This document shows, one piece after another, positions 8,177 to 31,083 of a DNA stretch of 64,000 nucleotides. The stretch's first letter is position 1. Each line of letters begins with the position of its first letter. The notes below the pieces were generated by a model that was not told where the DNA came from, made no database searches, and saw nothing but the letters and a program-made list of their open reading frames with translations. Source of the stretch: Blastocladiella emersonii ATCC 22665 (taxonomy: Eukaryota > Fungi > Blastocladiomycota); the NCBI GenBank assembly GCA_025594325.1, contig JANHCV010000009.1, forward strand, positions 1,054,001-1,118,000, written 5' to 3'. Position numbers and translations under genes: made by a program.

Positions 8177-10519
8177 TCATGGTGCAAATTGGCCGAAGGT
8201 TACTGCAAACTCGTGGGACGCAACGGTAATCGGTGCGATCTTGCGCATCACCTCCATCGGATCGTTCCCAGCTTCTGCGTCTGATGGTGCCCTGAGTTGA
8301 CGCGCGACGAAGCCAATCCAAGCTGTATCTCGGACCCCGTCTAACCGGCCCTCGGGGATCAGCGCCCACAAGGCGGGTTCAGCTGAATGCCAGGTGTAAA
8401 GCAGGTGATCAACAACAGAGTCCATGTCGGCAGTGAGCAAGATCTGAAGGGTCTTGAGTGATGCTGTCAGTCGACTCTCGGAGCTTGAGCGCGACGTGAT
8501 GGTACAGCACTGTCGACGTTCATTCCCACTAAACGCGGACTTGACTAATTTGTTGACCGAGCTTGCGAGCATCGGGACGCGTTTAAGCGATGGGAGAAGT
8601 GAAGCTAGCTGAGAAACGGTCGTGTACCACGCCTCCTGCAAGTCCAAGTCGCACTGTGAACAGGTTCTTCCTGCGTCCCCAACTTTGAAGTCGTGTTTAC
8701 CCACTTTGCCCGTAACTTGTGCGTGAAGCATCGCGCCAAGGAAAGCAGGAGCTGATGAACTTCGATCAAGGACTTGGAGGGTAAAGCTGCTCAAGGACGG
8801 ATTTCTGAGCATCGCGACAGGGATCCAAACCAGCGAATCGCATGACGCCCCCTTGCGACGAGTAACAAGTAAGCATGCGAGTACAAACGGACCGCGCAAG
8901 TCGGGACTGCGAGTCAGGGTAAAGACGCGGGCAATTCGTTGCGAAACCACAGCGGGACCCCAGCGGAGGTCCTCGTGAAGCGTCACATGCGCGAATCGTT
9001 CAGCAAGAGTGGGAAACGAAGGCTTCAGGTGCTGGTAAGCGAAGATGACGACGTTCGTTGCGGAATCGTTTGCGCGACCGAGTGAGCTGCTGGGCCAGTA
9101 GAAGGCCGACTCGAACGCTACAGTTGAGGATTGCAATTGTCAGTCAACCGCATACTGGGCGCTTAAGTAATTCGTACCTCCAACGACGACATCGTCGATG
9201 TCCTCGCCTGCCGTTTCAATGATGAGCGATCGGCAAGTCGCATGAAAGTTAGGTTGGGCAGGACTCTGTCCCTCTTGCAACGTGTGCAAGTACAGCTCGG
9301 AAAGGCCCCAAGTGTCAAGGCAATCCTTGTCGATGAGAAGTCGAAAGGTGGCGGCGTCGTTGAGCGAGGCGGCGGGTCGCTCGCTGTCAAGGATGGACGC
9401 CAGAAAGGCCCGTCCATCTGAAGTGGGTTGACCAACGACAATGGCGGGGCACGACTGCATCGCGTAACCGAGGAGATCAAGTGTGCCGAAGCCAGCGAGC
9501 GCTCCGAACGTTTCGAGGCCGCGCCCGGGTGCGGCTGCCGAAGACATCCAGCCACGACCGCGATTGAACAGGCAACCCAGCATATCTTTAGCCTCAGCTA
9601 GAGTGGTTCGCTCCAGGGTGCATTGGCGGAGAAAAACCGCGCGATGCTGCGTCAGGACTTTGGCAAAGCTTGGCATGATGATCCCAAAGCTCCGTTTGAG
9701 TAGCACGCGGAACACGCTGCCGCGCCATCGAAATGCAGCGAGTAGGGCCAGGAAGTCAATGAGCGTAAGTTGGACAGTGTTCAGGGGATCGGTCGTGTCC
9801 GTATCAAGGCGATACTGCTCCACGCCAACCGCCCACTGCGGAGCGGCAACAAGGCGAATCCATCGATCAAAGTAGCCACGAATCTGCAAGACTTGAGGCG
9901 CAAGCCGTTGGACTTGATACAACATTTCGAGCAAGGACGGCGCGTCGGGTTGATTTGTCGCGAGCACAAGCAATTGGCAGAGTGAAAAAGTCGGGAAGTA
10001 ACGGACCGGGATACGCAAGGTGTACTCGCTTCGCCCGCGCTCTAACAGGAACGCGTTTCGAAACCCGATCTCATCCTCGACCTCGTACTCTGCGGGAAGC
10101 TGCGACGGTTTCCGGATGTAGTACAAGATGCGTTCGAGCAGGAGGAAGAGGAGGTCAACGGGCAGGTCGACGTTACCGGCCCCGTGTTGGCGCTGGTGTG
10201 GCTCTCGAGCCAGCCCGACAAAAAGGAAAAATGCGAGAAGCTCGGTGCCAACTTCGACGCTGCTGCGGCTGTGGTTGCAGATATAGCCGCTATGAAACAC
10301 GGGCATCGTGCGAAGGACGATGTCGAGCCACACCAGTTGGACGCGTCGGCTGCGCGCGCTTCCCACAAGGCAGCCAGTCGCTGAGCACACAAAGGTACGC
10401 GGGGAGACTAGCTGCAAGACGAGTTCCGCGATCTCGGTCGGGATTTCGGCGAGCGTCAAGCTGTGTTCTCGAACATCAAGTTGCATCAAGTCCATAGATT
10501 CATTCAGGTGTTGCTCCAT
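8177..10519 (-). CDS. F-box-like lineage-specific protein, paralog B (~760 aa, two exons)
   Basis: ORFs 9140..10519 and 8177..9136 are in one frame. The separating TGA lies in a 60-nt intron 9177..9118 (GTACGA...CTGAC...TGTAG). F-box-like N-terminus, CxxC in exon 2, homologous to paralog A. Confidence 0.75.
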
Positions 10520-10582
10520 GGTAGTGGTCGTCGCTGAAGAGCGAGCGGGCGCGTCGATGTCGCGCTGAGGTGGGCTCGGCGC

Positions 10583-10607
10583 ATCACATGATTGATCGAC
10601 GCGTCTC
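10583..10607 (-). promoter_or_regulatory. ACGCGTCGA-N5-CANGTGA composite upstream element
   Basis: 25 nt identical to 21150-21174 and 22300-22324, about 65 nt upstream of the paralog B ATG and oriented with transcription. Related copies at 2334, 44315, 47117 and 51480. Confidence 0.6.
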
Positions 10608-10947
10608 GCGCTGTTCGCTCCGCGTCGGCTCCGCCTCCGTTAAGGCTAGTCCAACCCTGTAGTTTGTGTGGATGCGTTTGTGCGCAATTCTTACGATCAC
10701 TGCTGAGCTCCCGACTTGGGTGGAGCACGGAGCCTACTGAGTTCGTCAGCGAACGCCTGCGGGTCGAGAAACGCGTCCCTTCACAACCACATGTTTTGAT
10801 CAACGCAGATCGCTGCGAGATGCGACAGGTGTCGTCTCTTTCGCTCTGGTTACGCTTACACGGCAAGCACTCGGCTTGATTCATGTCCGCAAAACCGGAT
10901 CCCCTATTACAATCGAATAACCTCGCACAATTCCACAACCTCGCCTC

Positions 10948-18635: not shown

Positions 18636-20232
18636 ATGCGCTCCACCCTCTCCGCCATCCTCGCCACCCTGGCCGTGGTCTCGCTCGCCAACCTCGCCGC
18701 CGCTGCCGAGGCCGGCACCAAGTCGTGGACCTACGAGGGCGCCAACGGTGCGTTCCTGCACCTCCGACATCATCACCGAGCCGATCGCTCACATCTCTCC
18801 CCTCCCCTCCTCCAGGCCCGCTGCGGTGGGACTCGCTCAACCCGGCGTACGAAAAGTGCGGCAAGGGCAAGCTGCAGTCGCCAGTGTCGTTCAACGCGAC
18901 GGCCGACCTGCGCACCTCGGGCTTCCCGACCCTGTCGCTGCCGCCCGTCAGCCAGTTCAACCTCACCAACCTCGGCCACACGATCCTCTTTGCGCCGGCC
19001 GACGACCGCACCGCCATGCGCACCCTCGCCATCGGCGCCAACACGTACAACCTCAAGCAGTTCCACAGTACGTTTTCTTATCGTGCTGCTGCCGCCGCCG
19101 TCGCGTCGCGTGGGTGGTGAGCGCGGTGACGCGTCGTCGCGCGCGTGGCAGTGTCTCCCGCCTGCCTTCTCGGCGCGGCCGGCCTGCCTCGATCATGCAT
19201 CACATCACCGCCGCGAGCGCGCGCTCTCGATCACTTTTCGACAGCGACTCAAGCTCAAACTCAAACTCACTTCCACTTTCACGCGCCCCACCTCCACCTT
19301 CACAGTCCACACGCCGTCCGAGCACCACCTCGGCAAGCAGTACTACGACGCCGAGATGCACTTTGTGCACGCGACGCCCGACGGCAAGCTGGCCGTGGTC
19401 GGCGTGTTCGTCGAGGCGTCGGACCGCGTCGACCGCCGCTGGTCGCGCGTCCTCGAGACCATCCCCGACGAGGACGAGACTGCCATGATCCGCGCCTTCC
19501 TCGACACGTCCGAGATCGTGTCGCTGACCCAGCGCGGGTACTACTCGTACACGGGCTCGCTCACGGTACGTCCTGCTTACTATATCTCCTTGTTGTTGTG
19601 GTTCGGGATCGTCGGCTGTTGTCGTGCGGGGTGGAGCGGGCTTGGCGTGTCATGCGGACCCGGATCCGCGGAAGCTCGCTGCGACGAAGCAACGCGTCGC
19701 GCGTGTCCGGCGCGGCCGCTGAGCCACGCCGGCCGTCGGATTCGGTCCCGCACCACGCGCTTCCGCTGCCGCGCCTCACGTCATCTCCCTCTGCCCCTCC
19801 GATCATCACGCGTGCCCCCCACCCGATTTGCCGGATCAACTTTTTTCCTGCCCGTCCTGCACGGGCTTGCCGCTTCACCTCCCGCTACGCGATAAATACC
19901 TTATCACTCACTCACACCTCTCACACCCTCTCGCCCGCACTCAGACCCCGCCGTGCACCGAGGGCGTGTCGTGGTTCGTGGCCGCGACCCCGCTGCGCAT
20001 GTCGGACCGCCAGATCCGCCGCATCAAGTCCGTCATCGGCAACTCGGCCCGCCCGACCATGTACAACGAGGACCTCGAGGCACGCCGCGTCAACGGGACC
20101 TCGTCCGCCGCCGCCAAGAGCCTCAAGGACGGCGACGTCGCGGCCATGTCGGTCGAGACCAGCGGCTCGGGCGCGCTCCGGCCCGCGGCCGGCGTCGTCG
20201 CGCTCGCGGCTGTCGCGGCGATGCTCGCGTAA
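18636..20232 (+). CDS. alpha-class carbonic anhydrase, secreted and probably GPI-anchored
   Basis: Signal peptide MRSTLSAILATLAVVSLA, WTYEG, QSPV, zinc ligands QFH|IH...SEH...EMHFVH, SLT|TPPCTEGVSWFV, and a Ser/Gly spacer with hydrophobic C-terminus. Introns 18748..18815, 19068..19305, 19566..19944. Confidence 0.9.
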
Positions 20233-21147
20233 GCGGGTAGGTGGAGGGGATTAGGTTTTGGGTGACGGTGGATCGCATAGCGTAGATGTATTGCATTAGC
20301 TTAGCAACTGTATGTCTGTCTCTCCGCAAGGAGATCCTGCGGGTCGCGGTGCGCGATGGATTCGACGGGGACCCGCTCGCGGCGATCTACCTTGCACCTG
20401 GACTTGGCCACGCGGCGCACGTATCCGACGGGATCTGGCCCATGGCAAGAAGCGGCCGCATCGTTGACTGCACAATCACGCGCGAGGCATACTCGATGCT
20501 GTGCGACGCGAGCCCTTCCGTGCTACCGTTGCGCCGCTGGAGCTCGTCCGCAACACCACAGTGGGACAGCCCTCGAGCTCGGCCGCGAGTTTGAGTTCCG
20601 TCGTCGTCCGCGGTTGGAGCGCGCCGACCTTGAAGCGGTTCCGTTTGATGAGAGACAACGTGTCAAGTCGATTACGATGAGAAGCGGCGGCAGCGTGGCG
20701 TTGCTGTAGCGCAACGCGTCCCCGATCGTCTCGAGAGCGCGGCGTTCACGGCCTCGCACTCACGGGTCTCGGGTAACAAGAGACTCCGGAAAGAGCAAGA
20801 CGCTCACTTCGTTGCTTTTGGTGGATGTCTGGTCATCGCCGTTGGCAGATGCTGATCCAACTAGTTGTTTCTCACCACCGATCTCCAGACATGGCCAATC
20901 ACCGCAGCGGTGCCAGGCAAGCCCTCTACGCTGTAAGCTGCGATGGGGACGCGAACAACATGTTCGGGCTCTCGGGGCTCGTTCGAGTGCCTGTCGGACA
21001 TGGCGCGCGGCGACGAGTCACTCCTTTCGCAGCTGTCCATGATTGATAGCGCGCAGCCGGATGAAATGATGCTCTCGACGCTCTCGATCTACAGCGGCAA
21101 CGGCGAAAAACGCTACCGGCGCCGAGGCCCAGGCCGAGGCCATCGCC

Positions 21148-22050
21148 GAGAGACGCGTCGATCAATCATGTGATCGGGGCCGCGAATGCGCCACTTTCGA
21201 GTCTCGCGGTCGCGTCGCTTCTTCGCTCCCCCACCCGACCTGTACTCCGCCATGTATTCCTAGTCCATGCATAGACTTGCGGCAATGTTTTATACTTGAT
21301 TGGATGTCCTGGGTACATTCGCTACGACGCTTGGTTCGATTCGCCTGGAGAAAGGCTGACTACACCATTTTCCCTGCGATCCTTATAGGAAATGCCAAAT
21401 CACGAACCCAATCCAGACTTCTTCCGCTGCAGGGCAAACCCTCCTGAGGGCGAATACGATGTGTGGCCGGGACTTGGTGAGGTAACCACATGGTGAGCGC
21501 GTGGTACGTTATCATCTTCTGAAGCAGTGCTTGATTCGCATCACGCTCAGCCGTACTAATCTCGTCTTACGCCAGGTATTCGCAGATGTTGACGACTGCT
21601 ACAACTCCAGACTCCAGCACTTCCCGCATTTTCTGTTCAAGCTTGAGTGTCTCACTCGAGCGCGTCGATCCCAGCGAGACTGCGGCATCCACGGTCTCGT
21701 ACTTTTTAGCATCCACCACTCCCGAGCGAGAGCAGCTCCTCACACTAGCTCATCATCGCACTCGATTTATTCTTCTGCAAGCATCAACCCAGTGCGTGCC
21801 CTCAATTCGAGGCTGGCAGCGTGAGTCGCGACTTGTGGGTGACGTGCGTCATTGCATTCGTTCTCGCTGATCCGCGCGACTTCGTCCCTCACCTGGAATC
21901 GGTTCCTGTAGCTGGGCTCAGCTTATAGGCCCCGCACAGGCACTCGCAGGACGCGAGACGATCACGCTGCGGGCCTTGGCGAGGCTCCGCTTTGTGGGCC
22001 CGCACCTCTCGTTGCTGCTGCGAAAGTGTCGTCTGAAGTGAGTTGCGTTC
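21148..22050 (+). ncRNA. putative spliced non-coding unit 1 with 3' long hairpin
   Basis: Upstream composite element and AGACTTGCGGCAA at 21273. Intron-like segments at ~21313..21388, ~21504..21575 and 21844..21911. No recognisable ORF. The hairpin 21808..21978 is homologous to unit 2. Confidence 0.5.
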
Positions 22051-22297
22051 ATACACTCGATGCCTTGACTCAATTTTCTATCAATGACACCACCGGTGTT
22101 GCCAAAATCCTTGTGGACAGCAACGCGGCGACCGCTCAGGTCACTCAGCTCTGCTTGAATCGAACGGGAGCCTTGTCCGCGTTCGCTGCGACCTGAAGAG
22201 GAGGAATCAGTTGGCAACCTGTACGACCGTCGCAAGCCTGACAGTAGTGCAGGCTGCCTGCGCCGAGACATCGTGTCTTTCGCGACAGGGGCGAGGC

Positions 22298-23400
22298 GAG
22301 AGACGCGTCGATCAATCATGTGATCGGGGCGCCGGTGTGGCGCACTCTCGTCTCGCGTTCGCGCGGCGCCGCATCTCCGCTCCCTCACCCACCCCCCTAC
22401 TCGACCATGCAACCTTAGATCATGAATAGACTTGCTGCAAAATATGAATCCAGCTTGGCGATCTCGAAGTCGTCGAGGCGCGAGGACCGGCCTGCACAAT
22501 GTTTTCGTCACGCCGGCGCGCAGTTTTCGCTCCATGCCTTGAGCGGACGGCGCGGGTCACCGGAAGGCTAGTCTTAGTCGTTTGGGCAAGATTTTGTGTG
22601 CTCGAATGCCATGCATCCCGTACATGGGTCTCATCTCGTGGATGCACTGCTTCTGGGCTACCCGGACGACTGAGCCCGGTTTGTCTCCGACGACTTGTAC
22701 GCCACCTCGACACCCATGCGTCGATTTACTGACGCGCCTATGTTCGCACCGGTTAGGGATACACCGCGCTGAACGTGAAGCTCACTCGCGAGCAGTTTGG
22801 CGATACCCCCGGCTCCTTAACTCGAAATGGTCGCTTCGCCATGCAACGGCTGCAACTTTTGACTCTCAGCACTCGTGCTGGCGTTCACGAGACCCCTCGA
22901 ACTGAACGCTTGGCTCTCGGTCGCACCCGTGGTCTCTTGGGCCGATTTTCAAACTCGCACTATGCTGCCATCATCGGCAGCGCATGACCATACCTCACGT
23001 AGTACGTATCGAGGCTGTTGTCCGTTGCGCTCGTGGAAGGCTCGTAATCTGACTACGACGACGTAGCGCATCGCTTAGCTATCACTTCCTGTCCTCGTTA
23101 TCCTCATGCCACGCGGTCCACGGCGATTCGCTTCTACCCGCTGTACGCCCTCAACTCGGACCCTGGTCGAGGCCGGCAGCGTGAGTCGCGGCTCGCGGGT
23201 GACGTACGTGTTCAGCGTGTTCTCAGCCTTCAATCATGGCTGACCCGTCCTCCGCGCACGCGTAGCTCGGCTCAGCCTATAGGCCCCGTCGAGGCACCCG
23301 CGCTGTCCGCGAGCCGATCACGCTGCCGTCCTTGGCGAGGCCCCGCCTTGCGGGCGCGCACCAGTGCGAACGCACCGCCGCGAACGCGTCGTCGTCGTGA
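22298..23400 (+). ncRNA. putative spliced non-coding unit 2 with 3' long hairpin
   Basis: 34-nt upstream identity with unit 1 and AGACTTGCTGCAA at 22428. Intron-like segments at ~22698..22757, ~23002..23078 and 23204..23265. Conserved hairpin block 23167..23362 with compensatory changes. Confidence 0.5.
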
Positions 23401-23436
23401 GGAATGGAATGAGTTGCGTATAAATGCGTGAGTGCG

Positions 23437-24893
23437 TTATTTCAAAATCAACCGGCCCATGGCGAGGTAGATGGAGATGCCGACCACATCCTGCACGGCC
23501 GTTTCTACACGCAAGGGTGTTGGTGAGTGGTGGGAGCGGAGGGTGAGGGGGTCCGTCGAAAGCAGCGTACCGAGTGGTCCCGCGCACAGCGCAGGGTCAA
23601 AACCGAGCCGCTTGAAGAAGATGGGCGCGAGCGAGCCGAGGATGCCGGCCGCGGACGCCGAAAGCATGATGCTGAGGCCCGAGACTACGATCGCACGCGT
23701 AGAGGATGTCAGTACTACGACGCGAGCGAAGCGACCAAATAGAGCGTACCGAGACCGGTGCGTAAGCTGTTGGTCCACAACGCAATGACGCCCGTGAGCC
23801 CAGCGAGGAGGAGGATACCGAGACAGAACGCGGACGTGAACTCGCGCCAGAGCACCTTCGAAATACTCTTCCAGCTAGTATGCGACGCGTGCCCGGTCGC
23901 CAGCGCGCGCAACGTGCTTGTGGACGCCTGGAGCCCAATATTCCCGCAGATACTCGAGACCATGGGCATGAAGTTAACGAGCACGACAAACTTCTCGAGC
24001 ACGTCGCTGAAGGTGCCGACCATGGCGCCGACGCCCATCTCGAGGACCACCGTCAGCATGATGGCGGGCAGGCGGCGCACGGCGAGCGCCCACGGCGACA
24101 TCTTGCCGAGCCGCCCCGCGTCGTCGTCGCGCAGCAGCTTCTGCACGCGCGCGCCCACCAGCAGGTGCATGTCGTGCCGCGTCAGGCCCGGGTCCAGCAT
24201 CGACTGCAGGAACTCGAGCTCCGTCAGCGTCGCGGCCGCGTGCGCCGCACTCGCCGGTGTCAGGTCGCCGTACCCGTGCGCGCCCGCGGCCGCCGCGAAC
24301 GTCGACGCGAACGATCCAGACACTTTGGGCGAGCCCGGACGGCTATGCCCGCCGTACGACGAGAGCAGCGACGGCTCGCGCGACGCCCCCGCAATCGACC
24401 CGCCGCCGGGCGCGAGCCCCGTGCCCGCCGACGCCACGGACGCGGACCGGTACGACGTCGCGGGCGACGGCGCGCGCACCTGCAGGCGGAACGGCGCGTG
24501 CGGCACGTCGGCGTGCAGCGACCCGGAGCGCGACCCGCGCGCTGCTGCTGCGGTGGCGCCGCCGCCGTTTGGGCGGTGTGGCGAGGGACCACCGCCCAGG
24601 AGCAGGTCGCTGTCACCCTCCCCGCGTGCGTCATCGTCATCATCATCGTCATCCAGGTCGAGCAGCAGCGGCGACGTGCTGAGCGATCCCATGGCAATCG
24701 CCTCGAACTCGGGCGGCGCGTCGCTCGCCCCCGCCGCGCCGAGTGGCGGTCGCAGGCGCGTTGCTGGTGGTGACCGCGACCGAGACTGCGAGCGGAGGCG
24801 CAGGAAGCTGGTGCCGTTGTGCGCGGCGGCGGCAGAGGGGCCGTCGAGGTCGTCGTAGGGCATGCCGTTCGTTGTGGCGCGGTGTTGATGCAT
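23437..24893 (-). CDS. MgtE/SLC41-type divalent cation transporter (membrane domain plus disordered N-terminus)
   Basis: RRLPAIMLTV, GNIGLQASTSTLRALATG and DPALCAGPL|ETAVQD are MgtE transmembrane signatures. Two GTACGC introns near the 3' end. Start uncertain (24893, 24863, or 25115). Confidence 0.8.
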
Positions 24894-25461
24894 GGGGGCC
24901 GGGGGTTCCGAGCCAGCGGAGCGGGAAGGGAGTTGCAGCAAGCTAGCTTCGTGTGCGAGAGGGATTGCGGGAGGAGAGTAGGGAGGGCGGGGAGAAGGGA
25001 GGGAGGGAGCGGGCGCGGGAGGGGTGGCACAGGCGGCGAAGGCGGCGAAGGCGCGCGGCCGCGAGGCGCGAGACGCCGCGCCGATCGCTGCTCTCACGCT
25101 CTGAAGGCGGTGCACTCGATGTCTGTGCTCAGCTCTCAGTGATCTGGTGCTCTAGGAGTGCTTACGGTCGTGCTCATGGCCATCTCAACTGTGCGGGGGT
25201 CGGCGTTGTCGGGGCCGCGCAAGGGGGACCCGCTGCCGCTGCGAGGGCAGATGGGCTTCACGGTCAGCCCCCACACATCGGCCAAGCGGTCGCCCAGCGA
25301 GCGATCTCGTTGGGCGGGAAGTGCGTTCAGCCCTCGACGAGGGAGTGGGCAAGCGGGATGGAGGGGTGTCGAGTCCACGGCGAGCGAGCGGGCGGGCGGG
25401 CGATAGCAGTTACGAGTACATTTCAAAAGGAAGGGGTACGAGATCATGGCACAGGCCCACA

Positions 25462-25909
25462 TTACGCCTTGTGCGAGTAGGGCATGAGGCGGTGCAGCGT
25501 CCGGGTCATGGCCTTGCCGTAGGGCTCGGCCATGGCGCTCAGGCGGTTGAACCGGCTGCTCGACATGCCCTGGTTGAGATGCGACTACACACACGATGCG
25601 GAGTTAGATCACACGCCGGTATCGTAACAAACGAACCGACAACGCACCTTGTTGACCTTCATGCGCTTGAACTCGCGGTCGTTGCCAACGGCGAGCCAGC
25701 GCTTGGCCGTGCCCTTGTGCGTCTTGAGCTTGTACTTGGACAGCGACCGCACGGGCGTCGCGAACGGCGTCCATGCTACTCTCCGCCCACAGAACAGCGA
25801 TCAGTTCCATGGTCCCCAATCTCCGAGTTCAGTGGGACCCACCTGGCGCGCGGGCCACCGACACGACCGACCGCAGCGACGACGAGATGGAGGACAGGAG
25901 GCTGCTCAT
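25462..25909 (-). CDS. MRPL35: mitochondrial ribosomal protein bL35m
   Basis: Introns 25842..25776 and 25647..25585 give a Ser/Arg-rich presequence followed by KYKLKTHKGTAKRWLAVGNDREFKRMKVNK|SHLNQGMSSSRFNRL, the L35 signature. Not captured by the ORF track. Confidence 0.85.
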
Positions 25910-26143
25910 GACGTGCGTTGCACCAGGTTAGGGTTGATTCGTGGCAGTGGTGGTGGCGTAGCAAGGAGCGGCGATTCCACGTAAAGCGTGAGGCAAAACC
26001 GATTTCATTGCAACGCAGCCTCCACCTGATGAAACGTGATGTCTCCAACCCCGCGAGACGCGTCGGCCGCGCGACGCGTTCGTTTCACCGCGCGCAATCG
26101 GCCCTCCCTCTCTTCCTCGCCCCTTGGAACCACCTCCGCCGCC

Positions 26144-27490
26144 ATGAACGCAGAAGACGATGCAGTCACCGACCTGTCGGCCTCGGCCACCGTGACCGCC
26201 GCCAGCAGCGGCGGCGCGCGCGGCCTGCTCAAGTCCAAGTCCAAGAGCTTCTCCAACATGTCGTTCGGCCAGAAGCAGCACATCCTCAAGGCCATGTTCG
26301 ACAAGCGCAACGGCGTCCCGCCGCCCAAGCAGGACCCGCCGCGCCGCGCCAAGATGCCGCCCCCGCCCCCGCCTCCCCCACCGCCCATGGCGGGCGACGA
26401 CGAGGACGATGACTACGAGGACGAGACGCCCGAGGACGCCGCTGCGGCATCCGCCGCCAAGAAGTCGGCCGCGCAGCCGATTCAGCAGCTCCCGCGCCGC
26501 CCGCCCTCCCCGCGCCGCATGTCCAAGTCGCCGCTCAGCCAGTCGGTCGCCGAGGACGCGCCGCCGCCCGCGCCGCCGTCGGGCAAGACGGGCATCCCGC
26601 TCTCGCCGTCCAAGAACCAGGAACTCAACAACAGTGGCCGCCTGTCGCCGCTCGAGCAGCGCGCGCTCGAGAAGGAGGGCGTGGCGCGGCGCCGGTCCAA
26701 CTTCGAGGACCGTGGCGCACCATCCACTGAGCGCCGCACCAGCGGCAGCGAAGAGGGCGGCGCGCTGTCCGTCTCGCGCTCGTCGCGCCGCACGTGCCGG
26801 TCGACGCCGCCCGGCCCGTCCATCAGCGTGCAGCTCCCGTCGCCGAGCGAGTACGCGCACCCGCCACAGCCTCAGTTCCAGCACCACCCGCAGCTCGTGT
26901 ACCAGGCTGCGCCAGCCCCCACGCCGCCCATCGTCGCCGGCCCGTCGGACCAGCTCTTCAAGCAGACCGTGTTGTCGTTCGAGCAATGCCTCCACCACGC
27001 CATGGACATGAACACGATGCTCCTGCAGCACCTCGCGCGCGGGTCCGCCGCCGCGACAACGGCGGTCGCGGCGACTCCCGCGGCGGCACGCACGGTTTCC
27101 GCGCCCATCGTGTTCCCCTCGTTGCACCACCACCACCCACACTTCTCGCACGCCGGCTCGCCCGGCCACGGCGCCAAGTCCCCGACGTGCAACTACTGCC
27201 ACGCACCGCCGCTACCCGCGCCGAAACCCGTGGCAGCCGCGGTACCGCGCCGCTCTGAGTCATCGCGCGCAGAAGACGCAACCAACTACGCGCGCGGCGT
27301 GCAGCGGCTGCAGGACCTGGTCGCGCTCGTCCGCGCCAACACCCAGCGCCAAGCCAAGGTCATGGCCGGGCTCCAGGAGCAGGCGTGCGCCGAGCAGCAC
27401 CGTCGCGCGCAGCGCGAGGTCGATGGGCTCGTTCAGCTGCTGGCCACCGGCGGGGGTGGTGGAGCGGGGAAGCGCGGGCATGGGATGTAG
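26144..27490 (+). CDS. hypothetical, largely disordered protein with C-terminal coiled coil
   Basis: Long intronless ORF with coding-like codon bias, ATG in GCCGCCATG context, and Pro/Ser-rich composition. Confidence 0.65.
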   Translation: MNAEDDAVTDLSASATVTAASSGGARGLLKSKSKSFSNMSFGQKQHILKAMFDKRNGVPPPKQDPPRRAKMPPPPPPPPPPMAGDDEDDDYEDETPEDAAAASAAKKSAAQPIQQLPRRPPSPRRMSKSPLSQSVAEDAPPPAPPSGKTGIPLSPSKNQELNNSGRLSPLEQRALEKEGVARRRSNFEDRGAPSTERRTSGSEEGGALSVSRSSRRTCRSTPPGPSISVQLPSPSEYAHPPQPQFQHHPQLVYQAAPAPTPPIVAGPSDQLFKQTVLSFEQCLHHAMDMNTMLLQHLARGSAAATTAVAATPAAARTVSAPIVFPSLHHHHPHFSHAGSPGHGAKSPTCNYCHAPPLPAPKPVAAAVPRRSESSRAEDATNYARGVQRLQDLVALVRANTQRQAKVMAGLQEQACAEQHRRAQREVDGLVQLLATGGGGGAGKRGHGM

Positions 27491-27672
27491 ATGGGATGAA
27501 TACATGCGACTGGGTTGAGCGGTCGAGGATTGTGAAGGGTGAGGCGAGGCCGGGGAAGCGATGAGTGTATTCGTGCAATCCGACCCGTTCCAGCGTGATC
27601 ATGGCCACCAACTGCACCGTGTCCGAGTCTCGGGCAGCCGTCCAGCACCGCGGTGCTACTTGATTGTACAAA

Positions 27673-27729
27673 GGGCCGCACTCGCGCGGACAGCGCGGTC
27701 TTTTCACGGCGTCCGCGCGAGTGCGGCTC
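27673..27729. repeat. conserved hairpin copy A (19-bp stem, 19-nt loop)
   Basis: GGGCCGCACTCGCGCGGAC pairs with GTCCGCGCGAGTGCGGCTC. Paralog of 28893..28949. Confidence 0.8.
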
Positions 27730-28892
27730 AACAACGCGGAGCCGGGCGGCGGTCCGGGGGTGCCTATAAGCACGTTCGCGGCTCGAACCGAACGTCGCGA
27801 GGTCCCGTTCCGAGCGGTACAGGATTCCAAGCGGTCAATGTGCGAAGTTGAAGCGTCAGCCAAACATAAACGAATGTGCTCGCCCGCAGCCAATGGTAGC
27901 GACGAGTAGCCTCACGACGAACGCCGCAGTGTTGCCCGATGCGTGTGTAAACCTCGAAATCATCGAGGTGCAACGCGGTGGCCAGGGTGTAGCACGCTGA
28001 ACGAACTTGATCCTGGAGCATGACCAAGGCGATTAGCAGCAGAGTAGCGAGTGGCTTTTGACCGGTGGAACAGCGGAGAGGTTGATACGATGGCAACGAG
28101 GCGAGTCCATGTCGCTTCCACCGGTATGCGCATGGTCCATTGCTTACGGCGAATGCGACGGTGCATAGGCTGCGCCCATTCGCGCCTTGGAGATCTCTCT
28201 GCGGTTTTACACGTTCATCACTGGAACAGTTTGCGACTAGCTGTGTGAGTCGGACACAATTTGGACACGTCGAGAACGTCTTTTTCGCCTATCATCATGC
28301 ACTACACAACGCGCATCGTGCAGGACGCCCTCATGTTCGCCAGGTCGTACTGGGCAAACGTGTGTGAGCAGTCGCCAAGGGAAAGCGTAGAGCATAATCG
28401 CCTAGATTAACCAGCATTCCGGGATCCGGGCTACTTCAACCGCTTGAAGCGGGACATGCAAGCCGAGAGTGGCGCGTCAAACATGAGCAAGCGCCGGCTG
28501 GGCGCGAACGGTGGCGAGCCAAAGTGGCGGCGCGCCAAGTTTTCCAGAGGTAATACAAAGCGTCGAAGCCATAAAATCTATTGCAGCAAGTCTTGATACA
28601 TGGCGATGCGTGTGTACATGGTTGTCTAGTGGGTCGAGGGAGCGAGAACGGGTCGCGGGCGCAGAGCGGCTGAAACAGTCACGCCGTCGCGACGCGGAGT
28701 TCATCTCGCTTGCACGCGCGTCCGACGAGCGAACCTTCTCGACCCGCTCGACGTCGCAAGCGGAAGGCACAAGACTTAAACATGTATTCGACGCGAATCA
28801 TAACTTCCCGTAACCTCGATCGCCTGCAACCGCGGCACACTTGCGCCCCGCTCCATCGCACTCCGCTCCGCGCTGCGACGCGAATGTACCAA

Positions 28893-28949
28893 GGGCTGCA
28901 CTCGCGCGGGCGGCGCGGTCTTTTCACGGCGCCCGCGCGAGTACGGCCC
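28893..28949. repeat. conserved hairpin copy B
   Basis: GGGCTGCACTCGCGCGGGC / GCCCGCGCGAGTACGGCCC. The loop matches copy A at 18 of 19 nt, and there is a compensatory A-T to G-C change in the stem. Confidence 0.8.
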
Positions 28950-29843
28950 AGCAGCGCAGAGCCACGCGACGGGCGAGGCGGCCATGGCCGTAAGATCGCT
29001 GCACAACCAATGCTGCAAGGTTCGAGTCTTGAAGGCGCACGATGACGCGCTGCTCACTGGCAAGCAATCGAGACGGGATACGGAAGAATGGCGGCAAAGT
29101 AATGGGCAAAATGACTAGTGCGCGTGGCGCGACCAAAGACGACGGTCTACGCGCGGCGAGACCTGAGCGTCGCGAAGGCAGCAGCTCGACCCAGCTTGGC
29201 GCGGCCGCTGTAGAACGCCGATGGTTCGGGAAGTTGCGGTTTCAGCATGCGTCTGAGCGAGATCTGCGCCCCGTGCGACCCGTCGTTCATCTGGATCCCC
29301 ACCACGCGCATTTGACCAGTGCGTCTTGAATTGTGCGTTGCACGGCATGAACGTGATGATGGTCATGCCGCCCGAAGCACGGGAAAGTGGTCCGACCGTG
29401 CTCGTAGTCCAGCGCGTGACGGGTGCTACTCAGCGACAGAACGAGCACTGGTGAGCAGGAGCCCCGTGGGGGAATAGGGTGGCCGCATCATACCGTACAC
29501 AATGTCATGAGCACCTTGCTACCTGATAAGCCCGATCCCACACGGTCGTCGTGGCGCGGGAACACTTCTTGCAGCGCATGTCGTGTTTGGGCGCCGCGAG
29601 TCGAGCAAGCCGGTTCCGCGCGACGGTGAGACACACGATGGACGCGCCCCGCCGACTGCGAGCGCGAGCCGGGGCGGCCGCCCAAGGACGTGCAGGTCGA
29701 CGGCCGCCGGCGCCAGAGACGCGAAGTGGGAGGAAGTTGCAAGGGGAACGATTGAAGTGGGGTCGTAAGGGAGCGAGAATCGAGCGCGACCGACGCGCGG
29801 CATTTTCACAGCAGCGCGGCTAGCTCCAGTCGGTGCAGCAAGT

Positions 29844-30701
29844 CTAAGCTCTCCGTTGTATGGGTCGCGACATGATCTCGTACGGTTCGTCGAGCGGGTT
29901 GCCGTCGTCGTCGACGTAGTTGCTGGGCGAGATGCCGTCAATGGCGAAGCCGAGGCGGCGGTAGAAGGCGATGGCCGCCGTGTTGACTACGTCGTTCGTC
30001 AGCACCGCTCTTCAACCAGACCGATCGAAGAAGACGGAGCGTACCCTTGTACACGGTGAGCATAAGCTTCTCCATCTTATTCTCGCGGCCCACGGCGTCC
30101 GCGACGCGCACGAGGAACGCGCCGAGTCCGCGGCCCTGGAACGCGGCGCGCACCTGGACCTCGTACAGGTAGCCGACGGGCACCTCCCAGTCAAAGTCCG
30201 GGTGGTCGTCGGTCGAGAACTGGAACATGAGGAGCGCGGCGACGTGCGAGGTCGCGCGGTCCGTCAGCACCAGGAACCGCTGCTCGGGCGCGTCCATGTC
30301 GCGGCGCTTGTTGGCGTCGTCCCACTGCTCAGCCTCGTCGTAGATGGGCTCCATGTTCTCCTTGACGAGCGCGAACAGGGACTCGAAGAGCGGCGCGGAG
30401 AGGTCCGTGCGACGGTAGAAGGCGAGCGCAAAGTCGTCGCCGTGCCGACTGTTCACGTCCCGCGTCAGCGCACGGTTCGTAACCCCGCAACGTCAAGCGT
30501 ACCGCATCCAGTCGGCGAACCACGGCAGCCGCGAGTACTCGGCCTCGCCGAACGTGAACCGCTGACACGGCCAGCGCGTGCGTCAGCGTCGTGCACCCCT
30601 CACCGTCGTCGCTGCACCCGTACCTCGGTCGCGCGCTCCGCGATCCGGCGCGCCTTGCGCGTCTCCTTGGGCACCTCGTCGCCGCCTTTAGATTGCTCCA
30701 T
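29844..30701 (-). CDS. NAA40: N-alpha-acetyltransferase 40 (Nat4/NatD), GNAT fold
   Basis: LVKENMEPIY...WDDANKRRDM, YLYEVQV...QGRGLG, MEKLMLTVYK|TNTAAIAFYRRLGF, YEIMS. Three introns. Confidence 0.85.
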
Positions 30702-31083
30702 GTTAGGTGATGCGCGCTGCCGATCTGGCGTTCGCAAGGGCAGGGACGAAAGACGCGGCGCGTCGCCGATCCAGCTGGCGGAGGCGCCCGATCCCGCGTG
30801 TCTCGCACCCCCTCGCAAAAGTGTCTCCACCCTCGCACGTGCAGCGCGCGCGCGACGCTTCTCTCCTCCCTTGCGCGGGTAAACACCAGGCGCGGAGAAG
30901 GAAGAAATGGGGAGGGTTGCTCGTTTGCTTGCGTGCGGCGGCGCCGTGAGAACGCCACCGCCCATCGGATCGCCATGGGAGCCAACGGCCGCGGTCCCGG
31001 CGGCTTCTCTCCCTCTCTCCCCGCGCCGATCGCGCTGTTCATCACCCTCCATCGCTAATTGCAACGTCATTAACACCACCACC

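Follow-up and report, generated by a model that had tools for sequence, protein, structure and literature searches.

Hairpin-ended non-coding units in Blastocladiella emersonii as candidate offshoots of an orphan gene family

The stretch of DNA analysed here, 64,000 nt of the Blastocladiella emersonii ATCC 22665 genome (GenBank assembly GCA_025594325.1, contig JANHCV010000009.1, positions 1,054,001 to 1,118,000 of the forward strand; hereafter the window), holds four non-coding units of about 1 to 1.5 kb each, units 1 and 2 on the plus strand and units A and B on the minus strand, that are local samples of a genome-wide class. The explanation we favor, with confidence evenly balanced, is that the units are transcribed non-coding offshoots of an orphan gene family whose retained function lies in a hairpin at the 3' end. 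They would descend from a large, lineage-specific family of protein-coding genes, having kept its promoter and leader and lost its coding body, and each ends in a long GC-rich hairpin of one of two types, type 1 with at least 100 copies or type 2 with 5. Selection appears to act on the hairpin as sense-strand RNA. RNA polymerase II would transcribe the units from a family-type promoter, together with their protein-coding relatives, and the transcript would act through its 3' hairpin (in 3'-end formation or stability, as a protein decoy, or as a small-RNA precursor) and not through its body. A protein that recognizes a specific sequence may bind the conserved loop, which sits on a rigid stem of about 45 bp, or the structure may be a substrate of RNase III or Dicer. 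Such a binding protein is suggested by the invariance of the loop and the covariation of its stem; the length of the whole stem and the presence of Argonaute genes make a small-RNA precursor role possible, and the position of the hairpin suggests a role at 3' ends.

The units are probably transcribed on the proposed strand, because intact coding paralogs have a homologous promoter module and because G-U pairs are in strand-specific excess in the hairpin. In-situ selection is the simplest account of units in which the promoter blocks, the 12-mer AGACTTGCKGCA and the hairpins stay intact, the hairpins with compensatory changes, while the rest is unalignable even between tandem neighbors. More tentatively, this early-diverging fungus might maintain over 100 independently promoted non-coding genes, derived from the orphan family and co-regulated with it, whose sole conserved product would be a 170-nt three-helix hairpin with an invariant loop. 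Such RNAs would make up a structured class not described before and might, for example, sequester a protein, or serve as small-RNA precursors in a system that governs the orphan family or convergent transcription.

Genome-wide searches covered the 32.65-Mb, 21-contig genome of B. emersonii, and all conservation described below is among paralogs of this single genome. Its genes are GC-rich, with GC at third codon positions (GC3) mostly 0.83 to 0.96, and are broken up by low-GC islands. The parts of the four units, in window coordinates, are as follows.

21147 to 21180, + strand: unit 1, promoter block CGAGAGACGCGTCGATCAATCATGTGATCGGGGC (ACGCGT box plus CAATCATGTGA), 100% identical to the unit 2 block; 25 nt equal the family-gene block at 10583-10607 (- strand)
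21243 to 21285, + strand: unit 1, start region with short-ORF (open reading frame) ATGs and the 12-mer AGACTTGCGGCA (21273-21284)
21786 to 22010, + strand: unit 1, type-2 long hairpin (5-copy alignment, consensus fold of 65 pairs)
22297 to 22330, + strand: unit 2, promoter block, identical to the unit 1 block
22398 to 22440, + strand: unit 2, start region with AGACTTGCTGCA (22428-22439)
23146 to 23362, + strand: unit 2, type-2 long hairpin (inverted repeat; fold -120.4 kcal/mol, z -5.3)
23181 to 23265, + strand: unit 2, strict intron-like segment
27612 to 27785, - strand: unit A, type-1 three-helix hairpin (core match to covariance model R1 at 27640-27746, 107 bits, E 9e-28)
28582 to 28745, - strand: unit A, 5' module with CGCGTCGCGACGGCGTGACTG block, CT-rich tract, two ATGs and the 12-mer (28582-28593)
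28830 to 29005, - strand: unit B, type-1 hairpin (R1 core match at 28860-28966, 109 bits)
29834 to 29845, - strand: unit B, 12-mer overlapping an acetyltransferase stop codon

Sequence comparison supports the relatedness of the four units. Five collinear blocks are common to units 1 and 2, one of them 34 nt long and 100% identical (at 21147 and 22297), and units A and B have a 108-nt block in common at 82% identity. The initial annotation of this region had linked the units by shared short motifs separated by unalignable sequence, and this description holds. The 12-mer occurs at 21273(+), 22428(+), 28582-28593(-) and 29834-29845(-), four times in the window against no matches in 100 dinucleotide shuffles. 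A CT-rich tract and two ATGs of short ORFs precede it in units 1, 2 and A. GCTTATAGGC, CCGCGCTGTCCGCG, GATCACGCTG and ATACACTC lie where they had been placed, collinear and each with two to three occurrences in the window, and unit A shares 17 10-mer positions with units 1 and 2 compared to 4.4 in shuffles (0 of 300 reach this value).

The type-1 hairpin

When the whole genome was searched with the DNA of unit A, all 35 matches were restricted to about 100 nt. In an alignment of 32 copies, the type-1 element is a three-helix foldback of about 170 nt in which the loop (GUGAAAAG; GTGAAAAG in the alignment) is invariant on a 20-bp stem. Two further helices, a second (GCACCGCGCTG/CAGCGCGGTGC) and an outer third (CTCGAGTCTCGC/GCGAGACTCGGG), bring the stem to about 45 bp in total, broken by a 23-nt asymmetric internal loop on the 3' side. 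The unit A hairpin folds at -92.3 kcal/mol (z -5.5). Helix P3, with 20 bp plus four invariant pairs, reaches the stable stem of at least 21 bp used to recognize microRNA-like and hairpin RNAs (hpRNAs). Conservation is uneven: the loop is invariant, the stems (P3) are about 94% paired, the internal loop and flanks are 60 to 70% identical, and the bodies are unalignable. Similarity between copies is limited to about -60 to +60 around the loop.

Pairing in this alignment is maintained by compensatory change. Over 43 pairs, 83.8% of cells can pair, compared to 35 to 49% when partners are slid, and changes on both sides occur at 27 pairs. None of 500 shuffles reached the observed values, a test that overstates significance because the copies are paralogs within one genome and share descent; the slid-partner controls and per-helix counts are sounder evidence of covariation. 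On the sense strand of the units, 125 cells hold G-U and 61 hold A-C (p = 3e-6; 23 sequences versus 6), and therefore pairing has been kept on the strand of proposed transcription. This bias argues for RNA, not a DNA cruciform or an antisense transcript.

Model R1, built for the type-1 hairpin, was used to score 150 candidates genome-wide and gave 140 matches at E<=0.01, or about 100 distinct loci without reverse-strand echoes, a lower bound because only those 150 candidates were scored. Same-strand tandem arrays of two to four copies are common, with a period of 0.8 to 1.5 kb, and neighbors within them share the hairpin only. With at least 100 copies of the A/B hairpin and 50 of the 12-mer in the genome, the four-member family first proposed was a large undercount. 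One partial R1 match (26064-26100, - strand; model positions 28-64, 20.3 bits, E 0.004) falls in the promoter region shared by bL35 and the gene at 26144-27490 and is probably a chance product of GC richness.

No Rfam family matched window positions 20000-31000 at its gathering score (E<=1 search); the only hit, mir-790, scored 22.9 bits where its gathering score is 63. A scan of a viral collection returned no type-1 copy, and 51 loop matches in a metagenome scan were all due to chance, at 24.6 bits or less compared to 60 to 114 bits for true copies. Piwi-domain (Argonaute) genes are present in the genome, and RNase III is represented by one weak match. Three other ideas about the hairpin were set aside. 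By inspection, the 12-mer is not complementary to the hairpin loop. The arms are not inverted fragments of family genes, as in the Drosophila hpRNA model, with only chance matches of 12 nt or less. Helitrons carry a hairpin 10 to 12 nt before a CTRR 3' end and have a 5' TC end; here the hairpin is not subterminal, pairing and conservation extend symmetrically for 60 to 85 nt on each side of the loop, and there is no common CTRR end.

Genomic niche and the foldback alternative

Among the 23 array-terminal hairpins whose niche was examined, 11 face a convergent gene of high GC3 whose stop codon is 120 to 540 nt away. The orientation preference is modest (11 convergent versus about 4 co-oriented neighbors), and such a preference is also expected for tolerated insertions. 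A co-oriented upstream gene often ends 0.8 to 1.1 kb ahead of the hairpin. This niche is also that of both arrays in the window, with units 1 then 2 facing the 3' end of MgtE and units B then A facing the 3' end of the gene at 26144-27490. The convergent neighbors are mutually unrelated and do not form one family: one encodes the C-terminal portion of a methionine synthase, and others, from their translations, are presumably a SPRY protein and a TRAF-like zinc-finger protein. Two copies (L025 and L023, at G000:C11:2543696 and 2624287) are 94 to 100% identical for more than 500 nt downstream of the hairpin 5' edge, across a TRAF-like zinc-finger gene, and only 40 to 70% identical upstream, placing a duplication or gene-conversion boundary exactly at that edge.

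The main alternative explanation is that the hairpin, or the whole 1-kb unit, is a non-autonomous foldback transposon resembling a miniature inverted-repeat transposable element (MITE) that spread in low-GC islands and convergent gaps, and that often inserted beside, or captured, the 5' ends of orphan-family genes. We consider it somewhat unlikely. Much about the element is what such a transposon would produce: at least 100 dispersed copies and tandem arrays of up to four, an imperfect palindrome whose outer helices, P1 and P2, have the form of terminal inverted repeats, a location in low-GC, gene-poor stretches and near unrelated convergent stop codons, similarity confined to the surroundings of the loop, and, in the L025/L023 pair, a sharp change of identity at the hairpin 5' edge. 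However, no target-site duplications or direct repeats were seen by eye flanking P1 in the 32 copies, where the ends are fuzzy and pairing sometimes continues outward. Tandem neighbors have only the hairpin in common, no coding partner was seen, and the viral and metagenome collections hold no copy. Neutral decay would not give uneven conservation with an invariant loop, and compensatory changes with a 2:1 excess of G-U over A-C point to selection for RNA pairing on one strand. A foldback element would account for how many copies there are, for their arrays and for their niche, but would leave the uneven conservation and the G-U bias unexplained.

The convergent niche also raises the idea that the hairpin acts as DNA or in transcripts of both directions, as a terminator, an insulator, a fail-safe RNase III site or a cis element, with the apparent 5' module belonging to neighboring pseudogenes. 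At 10 or more loci, including unit A (facing the gene at 26144-27490) and unit 2 (facing MgtE), the hairpin lies between convergent genes, 120 to 300 nt past the facing stop codon, and a near-palindrome would fold in the antisense transcript too. We nevertheless find this improbable, given the strand-specific G-U excess and an element whose asymmetric conserved loop and 3'-side internal loop yield R1 scores of 36 to 46 bits on the reverse strand versus 107 to 114 on the sense strand. In addition, upstream members of tandem arrays are not beside a gene end, and the preference for convergent orientation is only modest.

The 5' module, its coding relatives and the unit bodies

What ties the units to a protein family, in the explanation we favor, is their 5' end. 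AGACTTGCKGCA occurs at 50 genomic sites compared to 2 for the reversed-motif control, and about 40 of the 50 have one architecture, an ACGCGT/GCGCCAC block, a CT-rich tract and an A/T-richer stretch with ATGAAY repeats, followed by AGACTTGCTGCAA. Written as a module, this is an ACGCGT...CAATCATGTGA block, a CT-rich tract and ATGAAYGAA..GACTTGCTGCAA, and it has the layout of an ordinary gene's promoter, seen in the window at 26036-26143. Three copies at C21:498-514 kb (motif-opened copies are labelled L083, L084 and L060) have the 12-mer opening an ORF (M-N-E-R-D-L-L-Q...), with differences largely at third codon positions; one is an intact gene for 478 amino acids (aa) and two are broken. A six-frame genome search with the 478-aa protein gave 98 matches, or at least 90 paralogs, many on C21 and some with stop codons. 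Two members in the window are intact and lie in low-GC islands.

9143 to 10639, - strand: intact family member (family hidden Markov model [HMM] E 5.5e-131), promoter block at 10583-10607, start codon at 10519, start region ..AATGAATCTATGGACTTGATGCAA
891 to 2402, - strand: second, more distant family member (HMM E 1.6e-15), degenerate promoter block, start region AACTTGATGCAA

Upstream of the first of these genes stands the block of units 1 and 2, GAGACGCGTCGATCAATCATGTGAT, matching at 25 of 25 nt, followed by a CT-rich tract and AATGAATCTATGGACTTGATGCAA (N-E-S-M-D-L-M-Q); in intact family genes the start region ATGAAYGAA..GACTTGCTGCAA encodes M-N-E-x-D-L-L-Q. Because an intact gene carries the same block, tract and start, the 5' module of the units is the promoter and start region of the orphan family. 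The 12-mer is exact between family members whose proteins are only 25 to 50% identical. Its conservation as nucleotides, which the initial annotation deduced from its different reading frames, extends beyond the window: it is read as DLLQ in L083 and L060, as ETCCN in L064 and as RLAA in unit 2. The family protein has no Pfam match, no relatives in a large word-indexed protein search, and no significant Foldseek match against the PDB. It is predicted to be all-helical with moderate confidence (pLDDT, the predicted local distance difference test, 66), and from the alignment its N-terminus, L..LP.E....VLQL, bears an F-box-like resemblance.

The module and its parts also occur elsewhere. GAGACGCGTCG, with a core like an MluI box (ACGCGT), lies in the promoters of an ordinary gene (26045-26065), of the units (21140-21160) and of the family gene (10583-10607), and is a candidate for a common transcription-factor site of this genome. 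Start-region modules with the exact 12-mer stand 25 to 330 nt upstream of unrelated high-GC3 ORFs at the following loci.

L067: G000:C16:1631552
L068/L069: C16:1902780/1941061
L074: C20:276894

Two of the ORFs behind such modules presumably encode an ABC transporter N-terminus and a D123-like protein, and the module may also serve other genes as a leader or alternative promoter. At L057 (G000:C4:886364-890420) and L071 (G000:C18:817973-822312), low-GC units that carry the motif but have no type-1 hairpin stand in tandem pairs, and a convergent high-GC3 gene follows each pair.

The two ends of the units combine often enough to exclude coincidence in copy placement, but only in part. The initial annotation had suggested a genome-wide search for motif and hairpin together, and this gave 6 of the 50 exact 12-mer sites with a same-strand type-1 hairpin 550 to 920 nt downstream, compared to about 0.04 expected from copy density; most sites lack one. 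The 12-mer and type-1 hairpin occur together at these loci.

Unit A
Unit B
C5:671093
C18:338205
L075
L076

The 12-mer is paired with a type-2 hairpin in units 1 and 2 and in one further copy (C17). Most hairpin units carry only degenerate variants of the motif (such as CTAGATGCAAT), and a short nucleotide profile of the start region was too insensitive for a census of 5' modules among them. The association is real but partial: module and hairpin are associated, not inseparable, since each often occurs without the other.

Several observations weigh against descent of transcribed, hairpin-bearing units from the orphan family. A recognizable 5' motif is present in only a minority of hairpin units, and most 12-mer sites lead to some other 3' end or to an ordinary gene. 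Intact family genes that were examined have no hairpin or inverted repeat after the stop codon, a result that also removes the hairpin as a 3' untranslated region element of these genes. Unit B has no promoter module, and since its motif overlaps the last codons and stop of a GNAT acetyltransferase gene (NAA40 in the initial annotation, which had noticed the overlap), it may be read only as a long 3' extension of that gene. In classical microRNA loci it is the arm, not the loop, that is most conserved. Finally, the family is known from one genome only, where conservation is all paralogous and shared descent inflates shuffle tests.

The bodies between 12-mer and hairpin, as the initial annotation had recognized, are non-coding. 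None has a codon-biased ORF longer than about 100 aa, and their GC3 profile is flat. Among 32 units, tblastx found no similarity. Bodies and candidate exons were searched piece by piece in six frames with the family HMM, where the best domain scored 0.9 bits, within the range of shuffles, and the whole-genome six-frame search for the family gave no match inside units. Decayed coding paralogs had been named at the outset as a possibility that would overturn the reading of the units as non-coding; the 5' end is indeed a start region of the orphan family (at least 90 genes), but the bodies keep no trace of protein. As in long non-coding RNA (lncRNA) genes, there is no protein-coding capacity, and units 1, 2 and A have a promoter of their own, aligning with the promoter and start of intact paralogs, whereas unit B has none.

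Could the units be ordinary dead pseudogenes of the orphan family, functionless, with their shared pieces the remnants of common descent? Many family copies are broken, with stops inside matches or frameshifts (L083/L084), and the 5' homology to intact genes is clear. We doubt this account strongly, because the bodies have diverged past detection although units 1 and 2 agree at every position of a 34-nt block and the 12-mer is exact in 50 copies. The hairpin covaries, and it is not simply a gene leftover, because the intact genes examined lack it. That the units encode missed small or spliced proteins is very improbable: a family-type start region with ATGs and three strict intron-like segments in unit 2 are countered by a 12-mer read in three different frames, ORFs of only 3 to 50 codons after the ATGs, the lack of a GC3 signal or of tblastx similarity among 32 units, and a blank exon-by-exon six-frame HMM search.

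The introns proposed for the units fared less well than their motifs. In none of the units does the loose GT..CTRAY..AG pattern, reported as two or more segments in each of units 1, 2 and A, outnumber its occurrences in shuffles. With a strict splice-site pattern, unit 2 alone is above chance (5 versus 0.47, 0 of 200 shuffles); unit 1 is marginal and units A and B have no match, so that being multi-intron is not a feature of the family. The three candidate introns of unit 2 lie at 22697-22756, 23002-23066 and 23181-23265. R1 has no match in units 1 and 2, whose 3' module has five genomic copies and forms a different, longer hairpin with arms of about 50 nt and 65 consensus pairs. In it the 5'-splice-site-like GGCAGC|GTGAGTCGCG pairs with TCACGCTGCC of the opposite arm and is followed by a variable stretch and then CTGAY and YAG ahead of the next conserved block; in unit 1 the variable apex holds the GTGAGT..CTGAY..YAG segment and a small TATAGG hairpin. 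The conserved GTGAGT of units 1 and 2 is not necessarily a splice site, because it pairs with TCAC in a long conserved stem, and the pattern would fit a real intron and a variable hairpin apex equally well. A tRNA-like TCGAACC string in the type-2 module prompted a tRNA scan, which found none.

Comparison with known systems

Genes for lncRNAs are known to have been born from decayed protein-coding genes, Xist and its ancestor Lnx3 being the type case. The units resemble it in that a coding ancestor's promoter and start are kept and the body lost, and in that function would lie in a structured or repeat RNA element. They differ in numbering dozens to more than 100 paralogous loci instead of one, in being known here from sequence alone, and in having as their element one conserved 170-nt 3' hairpin.

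Protein-recognized 3' stem-loops include that of histone mRNAs and the 3' tail of long and short interspersed nuclear elements (LINEs and SINEs), which is bound by reverse transcriptase. Like these, the units carry a covarying stem with an invariant loop close to the predicted 3' end of a transcript. Their hairpin is much longer (about 45 bp, three helices) and has no reverse-transcriptase partner and no poly(A) or simple-repeat tail, and what lies upstream is not a set of 5'-truncated copies of a single element. With MITEs and foldback elements the hairpin shares a dispersed, short, imperfectly palindromic and non-coding nature and enrichment in gene-poor stretches and gene 3' flanks; it departs from them in the lack of visible target-site duplications, uneven conservation, invariant loop, one-strand G-U bias and regular association with a promoter module 0.6 to 0.9 kb upstream.

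Hairpin small-RNA loci offer a further comparison. As at such loci, the units present an intergenic, long, stable stem-loop that is predicted to be independently promoted, in a genome with Argonaute. In contrast, the loop of the units is the most conserved part, the stems covary, a 23-nt asymmetric internal loop interrupts them, and there are more than 100 near-identical paralogs. A re-analysis of fungal microRNA-like RNAs and hpRNAs (PMC9757828) mentions no blastoclad, Allomyces or chytrid.

Should the units prove to be transcribed, few paralogous families of structured non-coding RNA known from fungi would rival theirs in size, and it has no counterpart in Rfam; their 5' ends would make visible a route from protein-coding to RNA genes. 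Several elements could be tested in Blastocladiella, an emerging model: the ACGCGT-CAATCATGTGA/CT-tract/start module common to coding and non-coding relatives, the candidate protein-binding loop and, possibly, a connection with RNA interference. If the hairpin is instead a foldback transposon, the outcome would be an ordinary repeat annotation and a useful covariance model.

Some loci also come as pairs with the same sequence or the same score (C5:544080/703724; C11:2706502/2742541, inverted; C18:484301/787898; C17:1404132/1586553). The members of these pairs, one of which is of Argonaute genes, lie tens to hundreds of kb apart and are large segmental duplications or uncollapsed haplotigs.

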